From: Bugula neritina
Taxonomy: Eukaryota > Animalia > Bryozoa
Direction of reading: 5' to 3'
Assembly: GCA_964035545.1 (NCBI GenBank)
Contig: OZ037773.1
Coordinates: 4,989,751-5,053,750, forward strand
DNA length: 64,000 nt
In this document: positions 54,201 through 63,791 of the stretch, piece after piece
How the letters are laid out: every line of letters starts with the position of its first letter
How positions within the stretch are numbered: the stretch's first letter is position 1
The notes under the pieces: model-generated
Databases searched by the model: none
What the model saw: the letters and a program-made list of their open reading frames with translations, nothing else
Told to the model about the DNA's origin: nothing
Program-made: the position numbers and the translations under genes

Positions 54201-54936
54201 CATAATTTACAGCATCTCCAGTTTAGACCAGTTAGTCATTTTAATTGAGCTAAAAGTACTTTGCTGTAACTTCTGTTCAATGAATGTTTAAAGTTTTTCC
54301 CCATATTATTCATATCCTAGTTTCAAGTATCTTCAGTAAATAATTTTATCATTTTATAAAAAAATTCTAAGAAAATGTTTTTTTTATGTGAAATAAAAGT
54401 TCTGAGCTGTTCCAAATCTAAATGCTGCTTATGTCAGCATGTCTGGTGTGAGCCGACATCAAATTGTGGCACTCAGCCTTGGGCCCCCTTAATTGGAATT
54501 TCTTGTAAGTTTAAGGTGGATATAAATTGAAGATTAAATTACACCAATTTATTTTGGCAAGACATTTGACAAGTGCATTTATTTGAAGATGGTACATTAA
54601 ACATGTTTTAATACTTTGAACATGGGCTCTGCTTATCTTACAGCGGTTAATTGATTAGAAAGTTGTGGTAAGGTCAACTGTTAACCTAAACAACCGCCCA
54701 TTAGATACCTGCTGCCTGTAAACAATGCCAACAACTATGTCAGCATCTGTGTCATTCTTTAGGCAGCATAACAAGACTGTGATTAACCAAAAGACAGAGA
54801 CAAAGTGATGAAGATTATCAGATAACAATGGGGTAGTTTATTTATAAACACACAATAGAATAAACTTTTGCAAAAAAGTCGGGCCTAACAAAGTACACTT
54901 TCTCTGCAGTGGACCCATTGAAGGCCGTCTAGAAAC

Positions 54937-57900
54937 ATGCAAGCTGTGTACATCGTGTACGCTCTGCTTGGCGCAGTTGGCGTGACCTTGAACTTGGTCA
55001 CACTAATTCTTCGACGAAGATCGAGTCCGACAAGCTCTATCCGCGGAGTATCAGCGGAGCATGGCATATGTCTGGTGATTTCCAATCTCTCCCTTACAGC
55101 GATCTCTATCGCTGGTTTAGTCGCTTCTTTCCAAGATTTATTTCACTGGAGCTCAGTGTTGTGCAATGCTGCCGGTTACATCACAGTCTGTGTGGTGCTG
55201 ACTCACAGTTGGATGTACATGCCGTCCGCTGTCGTTCTGCTGGAGAAGGAGTACCATAAGGTTCGGCTGAGATCATACCAGGGACTGACAAGTCGCATTA
55301 TCTGGTTTATATCGGCGGCCATCTTGGTTACTTGTGCTGTTCTTGTATCAATTTGTTACATTCCTATCACCGAGTTTCAGTTTAGGAGGTGAGTAAATCT
55401 ATATATCTCATTATATTCTTTCATTTATTTACTTCATGAAGTTTTATATTTAAATGATATTGCCTATTGGTATTGATGGTGTAGCAAATCAAAGCTCACC
55501 CTACACTGCTAAGTGAATTCACACTCTGGGGATTTAGACTACATCAGTAAAAACTGCACTCCTTTTTAGTAAAATATGTTTTAAAAATGAAAACTTTCTA
55601 ACTACCAATAAAATTATTTTTAGAAATTCTGAATAATTAATAACTTAGCATTCAAGACTTCCTTTTCAAACTCAAACCCTTCCTATTATAGTTAAATTCA
55701 TAGTTCAAAAGAGGAGTCACATCCTAACTGTATCAACAATACTCAGTATTCAGAACTTACTATAGCTTTATTTTATTTAACTTCTGTTTCTCAAAGGCAA
55801 TGATTATAGTTTTAAAAACAGTTGAAGAGGTTGTTGCCCACATTTGTAATAGAAATTTGGCTGTGCTGGGGGAGGGGTTTAAAATTTTCTTCCTTTTGAA
55901 ACCTGCACTCATTGCTACCAGAATTTTTAGCAAAACGCTAAATTATTTAAAGCACAGAGTATGTTGGCCAAATATCTTGAAACTCTCTTTATATTAAAGT
56001 GAAAATGAAAGTTTTTTTGCCAATTTTTTGTTCCAAAGAGCATTAAGATACATAAAACTTATAATATGCTTGTATTTCCAAGTTCTCGATAGCAAGTTAC
56101 GTACAACCATAGAAAGTACACCTCATTCGAACAGCCATTGAAGAATTATCCTACAAATATATTTCTTTCTTGCAGACAGCTGTTGTGTTTGCCTGTTGCG
56201 TTCTCCAGCCAACCCGGGTACGAGTACACTTTGCTGTTACTCGCTCTGGTGTGGTGTGGAGTTCTCTCCACCTGGCTCTGTGTCGTCGCTTGGTTTATCA
56301 CTTATAGGAAGAACCGAGGGACTGTGAGATACGTAACGGAGCACCATAGGTCATCAGTGTCAGCATGTGTGGAGGTGGGCAACAATACTGGTTTTGACTA
56401 AGTCAGAATTTCCAATAAAATTTTAGTGTTGGGTACCAGATATTAAACTTTAAAAGAACAGATTTGACTATTGTAATTAGAATGACTATATGCAAATTAG
56501 AAACTTGTTTTAAGAACTTGTAAAAATGACATTTAGTAATGTAATTACCGTAAGTAAAGTAATACCTACTGCATAGAATAACAGATATATGTATAGTAAT
56601 GTATGCGCAAGTTTTTCACTAGATTAGAGTTTTGTTGTAATTCAAAAACAAATAAATTGATTTCTATATATAGAGTCAATCTCTACCCATGACAAAAATA
56701 AACTTAGTTTAACCAATGGAATAGACATTCTTAAGATTTTAACTAATGAAGTTATAATTATTTTATTATCTGCTGTGACAATTTTTTGCTTTGACCTTGT
56801 AGATGGCAAACATTAAAAGCAGTTCATAAAAATATATTCTAGACTTTGAGGCAGCGCACAGCATAGTTTCTCTAAGATTAGAAAAATTGGCAAAACATCT
56901 TTGGGTGGATCAGTAAATAAAGTTTAACCCTGCAATAACTGACATACTAAGAATAAATTCGTAGTAGTAGTTTATTGCATCACAATTTTCTATATGGAAA
57001 TTTTTCCAACTGCAATATGAAGAGCATTAAGGGAGCAGCCATGGTCTAGGGGTTAGGGGTTAGGGGTTTGGCTTAGCAAGCATGAAGTCATGGGTTTGAA
57101 CCTCAGTAAAGGCCATTGGTGATTGTAGAAGAAGTATCCAGTCATAATTGCTCCTGTGCCTCATCTGAATAAGTCCTTAGCCAGCTTTAACAAAAACCCT
57201 TTTTATCAGGGGTTTCTCACAGGGATGGCGACTATAAACTTACGTAAGAATATGAAGAGCATTAAACTGCAACATAAATCATGGTTACAGTGAATGTTTG
57301 TTTACATTAGAAGATGTAAATCAGTTCTTGTTTGGTTTAAATATTTTGATTAAAACTCATCTAAGGCATAAATAATTTCTTTTTTTCATGTCAATTGTAA
57401 ATGTAGTACAGAGTATAATATGGTAACACAGCTATTATGTAACATGTAAATATTATAATACTGAATACAGGTGGCTGTCAGCTTCTCTCTCTGGACTGTA
57501 GTTGTCTCTCTTCTGTCCATCTATTTCTGGAGGCAGCTGGAAGACTTGTTACACGCCGCCATCTTCTTATCTCTTCTGCACGCAGCTGGTCACCCAGGCT
57601 ACTCTCTCCTTTCCTATTGGCTCACCAGGTCACATGATGAGGTCAGCGCTGTTTTGAACAGAGACACGCCCACTACTCTCTCGGAGCTCTCTCTCATGAC
57701 AGTCAACCCTGTGAGTAGCAGCAAACTGTAGACTGCACAATCAGTCTCTACCTTAACCTTTCACCTGTCGTATTAGTAGTCAACAATTTGAAACTGTTCA
57801 AAGCAAAGTTGGTTTGTTGTTAGTTATTAAGTTTCTTTATATTCTAATTTTCATTCTATCTTTTTTTAACTAAAAGCTAATTTTTTTCTTTTTATTTTTC

Positions 57901-60900
57901 CCAAGTTTGCACTTTTCTTTAAGCAGTCGTTACTGTTATTTTAACTTATCTTAACTCTTATTTTATGTTGTTTGCTTAAAAAGAGATAGAATAATTTGTT
58001 AACTACTATTTGATTATAAGAGTTGCAAATTGATTGAGTTCTATTTTCACTGCCAACTGGTCAAGCAACTGTTTGTATGTTTGCTGAGGTGATAGAAACG
58101 TTTTTGTTCTAACAGATGACAAAGCAAATTAGGTAATTGGCTAATTGAATGTCAAATTAAGGCTGTATTGGAAATTGATATGGCAGTCTAAGAGCTTTGT
58201 AACTAAATATCTTTCGTCTCCATATGCAGGATAAAAGTGTCCTAAAGTTTCACGGAAAATGGTTGGGCAGGTTTGGGGAAAAGGTAGAAGCAGTTATTAA
58301 AGTTTACAATCAAGATCAGAAGACAAAATGGATGAGAGAAACTAGGGCTATGTTAATTCTGAAAAAGACTGAGCACCCTAACATAGTCAAGTATTTGTGG
58401 GTGGGCCAAGGAGGTGCCTTTACGTTCCCTACTCATGGACTTAGTCAAGAATCTGCTGAGCTTTTAATAAAGCCAAGCCAAAGGTTGGTCTACCTACCTC
58501 ACCAATGCTGCTAATAGGATATTTTTAGTAAAAATACATTCAATCAACAATTAACTTTCCCATTTTCATTAGCATGAAAGAAAATTACTTTTGAATGTTC
58601 ATCAAATTTAAATGGACTGGAAATATCATCTTTAGGTTTTATTTCACTGATTACATGCAAAGTAAGGGTAGTAACTAGAAAAGTTGAGAAAAGCCTGCGT
58701 TCTAGATTAGAACTGTATAAAAATAAAATATGTGCCGTAAACCAAAATTTATTAAAACAGATTCAAGAATTTAGGCTATAGTTTACCAGTATACCAAATT
58801 TAGTTATCTTTGCATAATAGTTGCAACTCAAGTTACATTTATCTGAGTAATAAATCTATGAGTTTAGTCACCAGCTATGCACAGCATGGCTTTACCCTTG
58901 AATAGATGAGAATACGTAGAGAAATTGTCTACACCTGATGGGGAAGCATGGAAACTGCCGCACACACTTGAAATATGAATAATATTTTGAAGACACACAA
59001 TTTACATAACTCTGTAGACTGGTGGTCTATTAATCTATATTTTTTGCTCAAACATATAAATTCTGGTAAACATATTTCTGAAAGTTGAAACTGTAAAATT
59101 ATGTAAGCGGCTCACTTGTGTGTGAACCTTTGCCTTGAGCGAACCTTGATTTAAATTTATGCAAATTCATAATTTTTGAAATGCATTTAAAAGCATGTCA
59201 TATTTATGAATTTATTATAATTATAAGTAGGTGCTTCATGACCTGGTAGGTTCAGCCCTCTCGAGTTGGGTGTGTATAGATTAGCATAGAGGGCAAAGGT
59301 CAAGATATTTTAATACAGTATTTTTAGACGGGGTTTTCATTATACTCTACATATGTCCGTTAGAGTGTTATAGTTTGTATTGCAACCAGTGTAATTTATT
59401 TTCTTTACTATTTTATGAGTTCGGAATTCAAATGTCAAAATTTAATGACTATATTTCTTCCAATACCTACATTTCACATGGTGCGAATCATTACCAAAAA
59501 AATGGTTATGGCGAAGTTCCAATTTTATGAATTATGGTTGAATAATATTATTAAAAATTTGAGTAGTAATACTCAGTCCCTGGTAACACAAATAAGTTCC
59601 TCTTTAGAAAATACTTGACTTTTAATAATATTCAAATGTTTTGATTCTGTCTATAGTGACAGGGATGCTGTAATGTGGAAGTGATGTAACTTGATTAGTC
59701 AACTAACCTATAACATTAAATCTCTCATCCCAATTGCTGTAGCCACTTCAAATTTATGAATTATTATTGTGTTTTCTATATTTTGACCTCTTGTACACAG
59801 AGTTTGTTGAGTTTTTTGCTAGTTTTGCATGCATAATAATATGGCTCAGTGTCAGGTGGTGAAAGCTGCTATAATAGTCGGTTTTAATCAATTTTTTTCG
59901 GGGAAATTCAGCAGTGAGTCATTATTTTGTATCAATGCCTCTGTTCTAAATTAAAACTGTAGCAAAGAAATTTACTGGGGATTAAAATTTACTGAGGAAG
60001 TTAAAGAACTTATATATGTAAAAAAAAGCAAACCATGTTTGGTTATGTTATACATGTTTGATAAAAATATTTTTTAGCTTCAATATTACTGGGTTTTAAA
60101 ATTTATTTCTCCAATAATAATAATTCTTATACCTAAGTCTTTGGTGCATCTCCGGAATTTGTTGAAGGAAAAATCAAATAAGCATTTTAAATATTTTTGG
60201 CTTTGGATAAAGAATAGTTTATAGTAACAAATCTAAATACAGGTGCAATGAGTGAATGTATAAAAATTAGGTAACAATTTTTTGTAAATATTTATGAGTC
60301 CTGGGTTTATATTCTTTACCCAGAAAGAAATATTTTTGGTAATTTCCTTTCAACTTATGTTGACCATATTTTTCATAAATAATGGGAGTTGTCTTTTCTC
60401 TTTCAATATCCAAAATTCGTTCAACCAAGATTCAATAAAACTGATAGTTGTTAAGCAGCTTAGAAAATTTATATTGTTTTGCAATGAAAACATTATTAAC
60501 CAGTTTTTTTGTAAATTTTACCCACAAAAATAATTTTTGTACAAAGAATTTTACACAGCTACCTTTTTCAAATAAATACTATATTCAACTAAATAATAAA
60601 ATTTCTATACAATTTTCTTCTTTGCACCTGCTTGATGACAAATGAAACTCGAATCTATAAATGTCTTTTAGAAAGAAGGACTTCCCCATTTTTCCATTTT
60701 GAGATAAATTAACTCATATTCAATGTGGTTTGCTGAAACTGTTTCCCCATCAGCTTATTATATCTACAAATATAAATATATGTCAACAGCTGTTGTCAAT
60801 TCTGTAGGATGGTATGTGTGGAACACTACAAACATGGCTCTCTGAAAGATCTTCTGCTACACACCCCCAGACTACTTACTGGCAGCACTCTCCGGCACAT

Positions 60901-63791
60901 TGCCATAGGCGTTACGTCAGCACTGGCTCATCTACGGCAGCTACACATTGTACATAATAAACTTTGCTCTCGGACTATCTTCATCAAATCTATAAGCAAG
61001 GTGATCAATTTATGCTAACTATCTATTTTGTAAAAATAAACTTTTCATTGGATGTTTGGAAACAGTTGCATCGAATGAAACCACAACCATAAATTCACTC
61101 ATATGAGCATCCATTCATATAATGCAAAGCTATGGAAACCAGTATATAAAGCAGCAATTTAAATAAAATTCAGTTTAACCTTTTTTCAAATAAAATTTTA
61201 TTTTGACACTGATGAGTAATTTTATTCCAAAAAAAGTTTTTTTATAATTTTTTTCCGTTTTGTTTGTTTTTCTTGCAAAATATGCTTCTGAGAATATAAC
61301 TGGAGTCTCGGCACTTTATGAATGTTGACCAGTCACAGAATTACAGCACAAAATGGTTCCCAACTATCACCTGCAACATCACTGTTTAGTATATGGTTAT
61401 TCTAGAGTGGAACTGTTGTCGTAGTTGTGGGCAGTTTTGAAGAGAGCGAGCAGATAACTCTAGACCACCTCCGGAGTAGTGGAGATCCTCCATCTCGGGA
61501 TCATTGGGGAGCAACTATTCAGTTAGACCAGAAGTTTGCTGCTGATATTCGGAGTTATGCCCTCTTTATTTTTGAGCTTGTCGCTGCCTGGAACAAACAT
61601 AACGGTATGTATTGCTAAATGTGTCACAGTTATTCTGTTTGCATAAATGTTAATTAATTAGCAAAATTATGTTTGAACCAATTTTTGGAGCGGCCGTGGT
61701 CTAGGGGCTATAGCTATTGATTTAGTAAACCGGTAGTCACGGGTTCGAACCCAGATAAAGGTCATTGTTGATGTTAGGAAGAGCATCTCTTTATACCAGG
61801 GTTTCTCATAGGGATAGTGACTACCAACTTGTGTGAGTGAGTTTGAAGAAATTTTTGAATATTTTTTCATGTTTTGCAAATGTGTGTATCTGAAGTTGTC
61901 CTCTTTTCTGACAAAATCAGACCATTTCCGAGAACCTTGTAATTTATGACATGGATAACCGAGAAAATCTACTCAAAGTGTAATTATTGATTTTTCACCA
62001 AATTTTGAAACAATTTTGTGAATATTCAGATCATATGAAAGTTGTAAGCTGTGTAGTTGAATAAAATGTGGTAAGACAACTGACAAAGTTTCAGTTGTGT
62101 TCTTTTTATGTCGGATGTTTTGAAGAAGCATGAACCTTATAAAATATTATTGTTATCAAGTTTGCATATGTCAACTAACTGAGTAAGAATTTTGCCCGTT
62201 GAAAATGTCTGTTTGCTATGGCGCATATAGATAACTGAATCTGAGTAAATATAGCATGTGCAATAAGGATTTCGATTTGTTTCTATAAAATATATACTCT
62301 CATTTCACCGTTTAGTAAAGTTTGCAGGTGATCAGTGACCTGTTCTGTTGTTAGGTCAGCAAATCAAAGCACCGACACACACAGAGGCTGCTGCTGCTGT
62401 CAGCGTAATAAATGAGATGAACTTACACACCCTGCAGAGCTATCATTTGGGTGGCAAGAGGAAAGTTCGACAGAACAAGCCACCTGTAAAGTCCAGGTAA
62501 GCGTATGTTAAGGTGTATACATTTTATATGACTGTTTCTTTGCAATGGAAATTTTGGTTTATTTATTTCTTTATCATATGCTTAGTTTATATATATTTTA
62601 TTCTGGTGAAAAATTGTATTTGAATTTTATATAGTTAATTTACGTCATCAAGTTATTTGCTTTGAAAAATAAAAAAAATTATGTTTTATGACAGTCATCA
62701 AAAGTATAGATTTATTCTAAGTTGAGAAGTTTTACGAAAGAATTAATTGTAATTTAAAGGTTTGTTACATGTTATGTAGAGGTCTATTACATGTTATGTA
62801 GAGGTCTGTTATATGTTATGTAGAGGTCTGTTAATTGTTATGTAGAGGTCTGTTACATAAACCCGAGTTCTGTGAGATTGAGGAAGAGCACCAGTCCCAC
62901 CTCCACCTCCAACGACTGGTGGATGGAGAGGAAATGGCTATAGAAATGGATGATAGCTGTCCAAGTCATCAACAGGAAACCAGCGTGTTACCAGTGGACG
63001 TCATCGTTGACCAGTTTACTTATAACAAGTAAGAGAATTTGCATCTCTTGTTAATTAAAAACTTCAACTATATATGTAGTAGTATAGACTATGAAAGGAA
63101 GTTAGCAGCTGCAGTGTATTTCTATTTAATTGCTTTACTCGATATTTAACTATGTAACTATGTTTACTAGTATTTTATTGATGATTGGTTAAAGAACTGA
63201 AATATTCAACTCAACTAGTTTGCTGTGCAGTCCATGTTACGTTGAATAACCATGAGCTAGTGAAAGTTATTCAGATAACTGAAGTTGATAAAATATCTAG
63301 TCACGTGATATAAAATAGTACGAACATTAACTGATGGTTGCTGGTAGTTCAAACAGCTTTCATGTCAATGCAAATTCTCAGAAAAAATTTTTACATACAA
63401 AAGATTTGTTTTGTTTAGTTAATCCACCAATCAGGTTGCAGGGACATGTTTATACCATGTGACCAACATAGATTTTAACACAATGCGTAAAATATGTCAA
63501 AATTCAGTATTTCAACTCCTAGAGTCATGTTTTTCTTCATATTCCTAATAATTTCTAAGCAACTTAGACTATGATGTTCAGTAATGGTTCATGTTTATCT
63601 TTTTTATTTAAATAATATACTCACATTTTATCCATGCGTCTAACCAATATTATATTCCAGAGCTCGCTATCACCCAGTATTCAGTAGAACAGGAAGTAGT
63701 TCCGCCTGCAGCACCGACTCCGGCTATCCAAAGAGTCTTCTGTCTAACGCTGTCTCTAACGGCAGCGACTTGCATAGTCTGACAACTGCAG
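54937..63791 (+). CDS. 7-transmembrane (rhodopsin/LGR-like) protein fused to a protein pseudokinase domain, 3'-incomplete. Exons: 54937-55388, 56176-56374, 57471-57710, 58230-58483, 60808-61000, 61406-61604, 62355-62496, 62846-63028, 63661-63791
   Basis: Nine exons join in phase with GT-AG and no stop. Seven hydrophobic helices with WSSVLCNAAGYI, CLP, GYEY and HPGY, then AVIK, RE, HPNIV, EHYKHGSLKDLL, HIVHNKL and ADIRSYALFIFEL. Confidence 0.8.
57031..57244 (+). mobile_element. tRNA-derived SINE copy (full length)
   Basis: GGGAGCAGCCATGGTCTAGGGGTTAG...GGTTTGAACC...GACTATAAACTTACG, flanked by the direct repeat AATATGAAGAGCATTAA (about 57014-57030 and 57249-57265), a likely target-site duplication. 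Confidence 0.9.
61687..61835 (+). mobile_element. SINE copy with internal deletion
   Basis: Head GGAGCGGCCGTGGTCTAGGGG...GGTTCGAACCC and tail CAGGGTTTCTCATAGGGATAGTGACTA are present; the central segment is missing. Confidence 0.82.
62763..62857 (+). repeat. 4 x 22-bp tandem repeat spanning a splice acceptor
   Basis: Unit TGTTACATGTTATGTAG|AGGTC. Confidence 0.92.

Follow-up and report, generated by a model that had tools for sequence, protein, structure and literature searches.

A seven-helix membrane domain joined in frame to a predicted pseudokinase in a single-copy, apparently bryozoan-restricted gene of Bugula neritina

Can a bundle of seven membrane helices and a kinase-like fold that lie side by side in an animal genome belong to one and the same protein, and if so, how might such a protein signal? 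This question is raised by a gene of the bryozoan Bugula neritina that opens near the end of a 64,000-nucleotide stretch of its genome (GenBank assembly GCA_964035545.1, contig OZ037773.1, positions 4,989,751 to 5,053,750 of the forward strand), which we refer to as the window and number from its first letter. An initial annotation had proposed that a seven-transmembrane (7TM) domain similar to GPCRs (G-protein-coupled receptors) is fused here in frame to a pseudokinase over positions 54937-63791. Our analysis favors, with a probability of about 0.6, a single-copy and apparently bryozoan-restricted gene that couples a bundle of rhodopsin-like (class A) type to an ancestral pseudokinase and a disordered tail, the pseudokinase serving as the putative output module. 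Below, we first ask whether the two halves are indeed one gene product, then what each of them may be, and finally how they might work together.

The gene model has ten exons on the forward (+) strand, all with GT-AG splice sites and with a total length divisible by three, which gives a single frame of 916 amino acids. In order, it encodes seven hydrophobic helices, then a linker of 35 residues, a domain resembling kinases and finally a long tail rich in Ser and Thr. Translation would begin at the ATG at 54937 in exon 1 (54937-55388), six codons downstream of an in-frame TGA (54919-54921, + strand) that shuts the frame and leaves no way for an upstream exon to add a coding ectodomain here. Consistent with this and with the earlier suggestion that a large ectodomain is missing, the start Met is conserved, with an identical position in four lineages and one ten residues earlier in the fifth, and the frame is also closed just upstream in a third species (see below). 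At the other end, position 63791 marks the end of exon 9 only, and the gene continues beyond the window. When the model was extended past 64000, as the initial annotation had advised in search of further C-lobe or a cyclase domain, the last exon with its TAA stop codon was found at L002:344-1101, which is 344-1101 bases past the window end, and no cyclase or other Pfam domain follows.

Fusion of the two halves occurs at intron 3, whose donor (CCT/GTGAGT at 57710) and acceptor (CAG/GAT at 58230) keep the frame open from the last residues of exon 3 (..VNP) into exon 4; with this intron retained, a TAG at 57729-57731 (+ strand) would stop the 7TM frame (open reading frame, ORF, 57471-57731). These ORFs and signals all lie where the initial annotation had put them, and its call for reads across the 57710>58230 joint could be followed over 54900-60899 (the region of exons 1-5) using two sequencing runs: X2, a DNA run of the source organism (0.93 of words), and X1, a 2016 library labeled metagenomic RNA-Seq and 'symbiont metagenome', the contigs of which are about 92% identical to the exons and hence come from a close relative. 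In the X1 contigs the joints 55382>56174, 56374>57471, 57710>58230 and 58483>60808 are all found, the last three with GT..AG ends, while the DNA run X2 shows no exon-exon joints across the compared region. Mean word depth in X1 is about 150-250 for exon and junction contigs and about 20 for intronic ones, and the start of the fusion intron is covered by low-depth contigs alone (about 20-26), a pattern more in keeping with RNA on a background of some pre-mRNA or DNA than with a retrocopy. Forty differences between X1 and the window were listed for exons 1 and 2, among them 21 synonymous and 19 non-synonymous ones, the latter mostly exchanges between V, I, L and A; this bias towards synonymous and conservative substitutions indicates purifying selection.

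Comparison with other genomes points the same way. An exhaustive HMMER search of 1.84 billion representatives with exon 1 as query returned five proteins at E <=0.001, the fifth and weakest of which (E 7.8e-4) is an unrelated ankyrin-repeat protein. The sole full-length relative among the other four (P0001-P0004) is P0002 (XP_067938517), a 961-residue RefSeq 'uncharacterized protein' of the cheilostome bryozoan Watersipora subatra that is collinear with our gene model over the entire length between first Met and C-terminus and shares with it the 7TM and kinase-like parts, the linker and the islands of the tail; the remaining ones are exon-1-sized ORFs on Logan and ENA assemblies. A third species, the GC-richer organism behind metagenome contig L006 (L006:1531-3624, with near-identical copies on L008 and L009; L007 was left out of this comparison), has a compact version of the gene with introns of 67-364 nt. 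Its first five exons follow each other on one strand with lengths of 452/199/240/248/193 nt, as opposed to 452/199/240/254/193 nt in Bugula, and its fusion intron of 239 nt occupies the same phase-0 site, after '..MNP'. Exons 1 and 2 of yet a further lineage are found on contig L010. Both gene halves are single-copy in the Bugula genome, and the gene as a whole is apparently restricted to bryozoans. Word-based searches started from the full ortholog, or from either its 7TM or its kinase part, recovered the ortholog alone, a result that says little about distant relatives.

Taken together, these data uphold the in-frame 7TM-kinase fusion as spliced, single-copy and conserved across three genomes. 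They leave very little room for the idea that two adjacent genes have been joined by read-through or an assembly artefact, or that we are dealing with a decaying pseudogene, a scenario we regard as largely refuted. It could draw on an ATG at 58224 (58224-58229) which lies across the acceptor of exon 4, shares the frame of the kinase part and could open a separate ORF and, from an intronic promoter, start a kinase-only product; the homologous stretch before exon 4 in L006 encodes no Met in the kinase frame. It could also draw on the read data, as X1 is RNA-Seq by label and its short Logan contigs reach across each joint by no more than 26-43 letters. Against this scenario, however, speak the identical in-frame junction and intron position in three genomes, the fused RefSeq model of Watersipora, a junction contig as deep as the exons, yet missing from the DNA run, a frame that stays open through all ten exons and a bias of the substitutions towards synonymous ones. 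Further points weigh on our preferred reading: read support covers the first four joints, with exons 6-10 following the inferred model, and restriction to bryozoans is a matter of inference.

What, then, is the kinase-like half? Exon 4 (58230-58483, + strand) encodes an N-lobe without a Gly-loop but with the beta3 Lys, the alphaC Glu, an HPNIVKY stretch and a 20-residue insert, exon 5 (60808-61000, +) the hinge, alphaD-alphaE and the catalytic loop, and exon 6 (61406-61604, +), matched by the Watersipora protein in a genome search, an activation segment and alphaF with its conserved Asp (DIRSYAL). Kinase ancestry is recognized by the Pfam model PK_Tyr_Ser-Thr, which the Watersipora ortholog passes with 27.2 bits (cut-off 23.1) and to which exon 5 alone aligns with 31.8 bits (E 1.2e-7) and exon 4 with E 0.015, so that the HMMER check of this half came out as expected by the initial annotation; the general Pkinase model, at 26.5 bits, stays under its cut-off of 31.7. 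Family-profile searches of the PDB rank TNNI3K first (E 6e-8), followed by IRE1, JAK2, RAF, CTR1 and PERK, with alignments that run from beta2 to alphaF, while a single-sequence search gave weak matches to PLK, IRE1 and KSR2. In Atlas, residues 296-575 neighbor kinase clusters by features (0.95) and by structure (template modeling score, TM-score, 0.51-0.59). Judged by these alignments, the domain appears to be a very divergent kinase fold nearest to the TKL group (TNNI3K), with IRE1, JAK2, PLK and PERK close behind.

Alignment of the three species shows how much of the catalytic machinery has gone. No glycine occupies the Gly-loop positions. The beta3 Lys persists here (58299-58301) and in the Watersipora protein, with Thr in its place in L006, and the alphaC Glu has been retained. 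The HRD motif has turned into HNK here (60953-60961), into HNN in Watersipora and into HKK in L006, and each of the three species carries Thr for the catalytic-loop Asn. DFG reads SFE here (61433-61441) and DFE in Watersipora; APE is absent, whereas both species with coverage of alphaF retain its Asp. Hence, the residue set of an active kinase is incomplete in Bugula, with Gly-loop, HRD Asp, catalytic-loop Asn and DFG Asp lost and Lys and Glu retained, just as the initial annotation had read these motifs. Since the catalytic Asp and Asn are lost in three of three species, their loss must be older than the split of these lineages, and the domain is, as far as its residues tell, an ancestral pseudokinase under constraint rather than an enzyme in recent decay. 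An atypical kinase that stays active through compensating residues at other sites, in the manner of WNK or CASK, might be envisaged from the beta3 Lys and alphaC Glu of two species, the DFG Asp of Watersipora and the alphaF Asp of both species covered, but to our minds it is highly improbable given that catalytic Asp and Asn are replaced throughout, that the Gly-loop is absent, that Thr takes the place of the beta3 Lys in the third species and that the DFG Asp is Ser here. As for the completeness of the pseudokinase fold, two points count against our reading: the kinase part, when modeled with AlphaFold from alignments of 4-5 rows, reached a predicted local distance difference test score (pLDDT) of 34, so that this model was not used, and the region where alphaG-alphaH would be expected, exon 7 (62355-62496, + strand, splice sites inferred), is basic and poorly conserved. 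The interval between alphaF and a conserved 'KP(E/K)F' agrees with that of a full C-lobe; this motif falls in exon 8 (62846-63028, + strand, splice sites likewise inferred), whose 'KPEF..I.EE', ahead of an acidic stretch of tail, may possibly be a remnant of the RPSF end of TK/TKL domains. Dead kinase folds that serve as allosteric or scaffold modules directly downstream of receptors are well known from the kinase-homology domain (KHD) of membrane guanylyl cyclases, from JAK JH2 and from TKL pseudokinases such as KSR and ILK. The present domain shares its dead fold with them, and KSR2 and JAK2 are among its weak PDB matches, but those modules belong to single-pass or cytosolic proteins in which an active enzyme follows or partners them, whereas here the receptor part has seven helices and no catalytic domain comes after.

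The nature of the membrane half is more difficult to decide. It takes up the N-terminal 270 residues, with an extracellular N-terminus of 3 residues, and is spread over exon 1 (TM1-TM4), exon 2 (56176-56374, + strand; extracellular loop 2, ECL2, with a conserved Cys-x-Pro, TM5 and the third intracellular loop) and exon 3 (57471-57710, + strand; TM6, TM7 and the conserved linker LxR(D/E)xPxxL). In X1, exon 1 is covered by a contig over 54906-55382, and exon 2 is flanked by joints on both sides. An early gene model scanned for hydropathy (Kyte-Doolittle) gave six peaks over the cut-off and a weaker TM7, and an AlphaFold model of the ortholog (4-5-row alignment) shows seven helices, albeit poorly packed (pLDDT 56, predicted TM-score, pTM, 0.41), so that the count of seven proposed earlier stands on six clear helices and a weaker seventh. 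Basic residues are concentrated in the odd-numbered loops (1, 3 and 5) and behind helix 7, which predicts an N-out, C-in topology with the kinase-like domain in the cytosol.

Is this bundle a GPCR? No Pfam 7TM family recognizes it at E values up to 10 (window exons and P0002:1-295), and a single 7TM sequence finds no match in the PDB. A family profile, though, brings EP4, LPA5 and GPR65 to the top of the PDB matches (E 0.087-2.6) with TM1, TM2 and the TM3 Cys in register, and in hhalign comparisons with 20 class A receptors of the same genome the family is collinear over all seven helices at P 0.0012-0.0015, as compared with about 0.1 for controls with reversed sequences (these served as the null, as column rotation is a poor control through which the TM1-3 signal survives). 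The pairings are those one would expect of a class A receptor: N19 with N1.50, a family Asp (Asn in this species) with D2.50, C76 with C3.25, E-R-Y/H with DRY, the ECL2 Cys with its counterpart, the TM6 Trp with W6.48 and HP with the NP of NPxxY (P7.50). Atlas places the model of the ortholog next to a 7tm_1 cluster (TM-score 0.69), and a Foldseek search with the 7TM model returned only GPCRs among its best 50 rows, each of them with E of at least 0.1. A wide VIA-align search yielded generic helical bundles over residues 1-105 only and was disregarded as uninformative, and an opsin identity was rejected by eye for want of a Lys in TM7.

We conclude from this that the membrane half is probably a very divergent rhodopsin-like domain of class A type, and that the earlier label 'GPCR-like' is moderately supported: it gains from the in-register class A alignment and the 7tm_1 neighbor, and suffers from the failure of Pfam to match. 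The statistical footing of class A ancestry is weak, with a P of about 1e-3, PDB E values of at least 0.087, Foldseek E values of at least 0.1 and a model pLDDT of 56. Conceivably, the membrane part is not derived from a GPCR at all but is an unrelated or convergent seven-helix anchor that tethers a pseudokinase scaffold. Besides the missing Pfam and single-sequence PDB matches, the generic VIA-align rows over the first 105 residues and a word-based search without stand-alone 7TM relatives would agree with such an anchor, but we consider it unlikely, as hhalign puts seven helices together with seven hallmark positions in register and scores above the reversed controls, and both the best PDB profile matches, class A in the right register, and the Atlas neighbor belong to the rhodopsin-like receptors. 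Less of the initial annotation survives when it comes to a more precise affiliation. The marks it took for LGR/GRL101-like are present as letters, yet nothing singles out LGRs among class A: there is no ectodomain, no LGR appears among the PDB profile matches, and TSHR, FSHR and LHCGR merely hold ranks 16-44 among equally weak Foldseek rows, so that a specific LGR/GRL101 origin is not supported.

If the bundle is of class A type, does it still couple to G proteins? All lineages share N1.50, C3.25 and the ECL2 Cys, while D2.50 occurs in four of the five and the ERY triplet in two, namely in Watersipora and P0001; elsewhere the latter is degenerate, and in Bugula it reads EKEY, with Arg3.50 deleted, in an exon that also has Asn at 2.50. 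W6.48 is kept, but P5.50, P6.50 and Y7.53 are missing, and NPxxY is replaced by HPxxS in two species (HPGYS here) and absent from the third. Classical activation of G proteins seems unlikely in Bugula because both Arg3.50 and Tyr7.53 are missing, and on these residues coupling has probably been weakened or lost in this species. The intact ERY of Watersipora and P0001, on the other hand, argues against extending this to all members, and G-protein coupling may well persist elsewhere in the family. This bears on a more conventional view, according to which the protein is an ordinary, G-protein-coupled class A orphan whose C-terminal pseudokinase merely regulates trafficking, desensitization or scaffolding, much as long GPCR C-tails do. 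While ERY at the end of TM3 in two lineages, D2.50 in four, N1.50, the C3.25-ECL2 Cys pair and W6.48 would suit such a receptor, the deletion of Arg3.50 and the Asn at 2.50 in Bugula, the loss of NPxxY and the missing P5.50 and P6.50 would not, and we rate it as a doubtful option.

Our preferred reading, in which the pseudokinase acts as output module, may be pictured as follows. The 7TM bundle would be the sensor, and its movement would be relayed via the conserved linker to the tethered pseudokinase, which, without phosphotransfer, may serve partners from the cytosol and phosphorylation of the tail by docking or allostery; the tail would be the regulated output. A bolder version would see here a bryozoan receptor class that evolved independently of those in protists and sponges and combines a rhodopsin-type sensor that does without G proteins, an attached pseudokinase recruiting an active kinase or another partner and a phospho-regulated tail; we put this forward tentatively, as a possibility that at present has the odds against it. 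Were it true, it would be a bilaterian counterpart of the logic of cytokine receptors and JAK JH2, or of the guanylyl cyclase KHD, on a GPCR chassis.

The Ser/Thr-rich and disordered tail is about 350 residues long, and no Pfam domain is found in the tail exons or in ortholog residues 530-961. Three islands are nevertheless shared with Watersipora: GSxSxCSTD(S/T)GYPxSL in exon 9 (63661-63791, + strand), a helix-like L(V/A)ELAEKVT(E/Q)D and, at the C-terminus, YDI(I/V)T(S/P)H(V/L)L. The DSG...S core of the exon 9 motif resembles a phosphodegron and may be a putative one. Directly 5' of exon 8, a tandem repeat with the unit 'gttatgtagaggtctgtta' occupies 62740-62850 and offers several identical candidate acceptors, only the last of which leaves the frame open. 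Other repeats populate the introns. Two copies of a short interspersed nuclear element (SINE) with a tRNA-like head, 73% alike, lie in intron 2 (57025-57250) and intron 6 (61685-61850), and k-mer depth in the bin 57100-57299 exceeds 350,000 in both X1 and X2, indicative of a repeat family of very high abundance; in the region, the SINE copies included, ARAGORN detects no tRNA gene. Intron 4 holds another high-copy repeat (58500-58900) with a depth of about 5,000 in X1 and about 16,000 in X2 and with many loose ends at 58684-58717.

How does the gene relate to known receptor-kinase fusions? Fusions of 7TM domains to protein kinases have been described from oomycetes, amoebozoans and ciliates (PMC6033456, PMC10463195), GPCR-kinase fusions from acanthoecid choanoflagellates and, as GPCR-TK, from sponges (PMC12716839), and a few sea-urchin and felid gene models combine a GPCR with a kinase as well (PMC10463195). 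The initial annotation, which had named oomycetes and Dictyostelium, was thus right about these groups but drew the circle too narrowly, leaving aside choanoflagellates, sponges (PMC12716839) and the few sea-urchin models (PMC10463195). Repeated independent origins have been argued for GPCR-kinase fusions, none of which is functionally characterized (PMC12716839). Like the GPCR-TKL/K and GPCR-TK combinations, the present protein has a receptor-type 7TM domain followed by a C-terminal protein-kinase fold, here nearest to TKL. By description, however, it differs from both in being bilaterian (Bryozoa), in having a kinase that is dead in all members seen and in lacking essentially any extracellular N-terminus; moreover, its 7TM domain is an orphan without detectable sequence relatives outside its own family in the searches run. 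Dictyostelium RpkA and Phytophthora GK4 (GPCR-PIPK) also join a 7TM domain covalently to a C-terminal kinase-type effector (PMC3206951, PMC5784254), but theirs is an active lipid kinase of PIP5K fold rather than a protein-kinase fold, and neither half is homologous to the present gene. With class A orphan GPCRs, finally, our protein has in common seven helices, the N-out, C-in topology and, in register, N1.50, D2.50, C3.25 and the ECL2 Cys, E/DRY (as ERY in two lineages), W6.48 and P7.50. It parts from them in failing Pfam 7tm_1, in being devoid of P5.50, P6.50 and Y7.53 and in carrying a cytosolic extension of about 620 residues behind an N-terminus of three.

We found no paper that describes this 7TM-pseudokinase family, and the Watersipora protein is unnamed in RefSeq. 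As no 7TM hidden Markov model recognizes it, the family would be missed by domain-based GPCR surveys. What is new here is not the architecture itself, which was already known, but apparently a bilaterian, lineage-restricted and catalytically dead version of the GPCR-kinase fusion. A survey of holozoans reported GPCR-kinase fusions in sponges and in no other animal lineage, so a conserved, expressed and single-copy bilaterian case implies that the architecture reaches beyond protists and early-branching animals. The kinase was already dead before the sampled species diverged, which argues that an attached kinase fold can be retained for a non-catalytic role. In Bugula and its relatives, the gene thus offers a compact and testable case of how a seven-helix bundle might signal to a tethered intracellular domain without G proteins.

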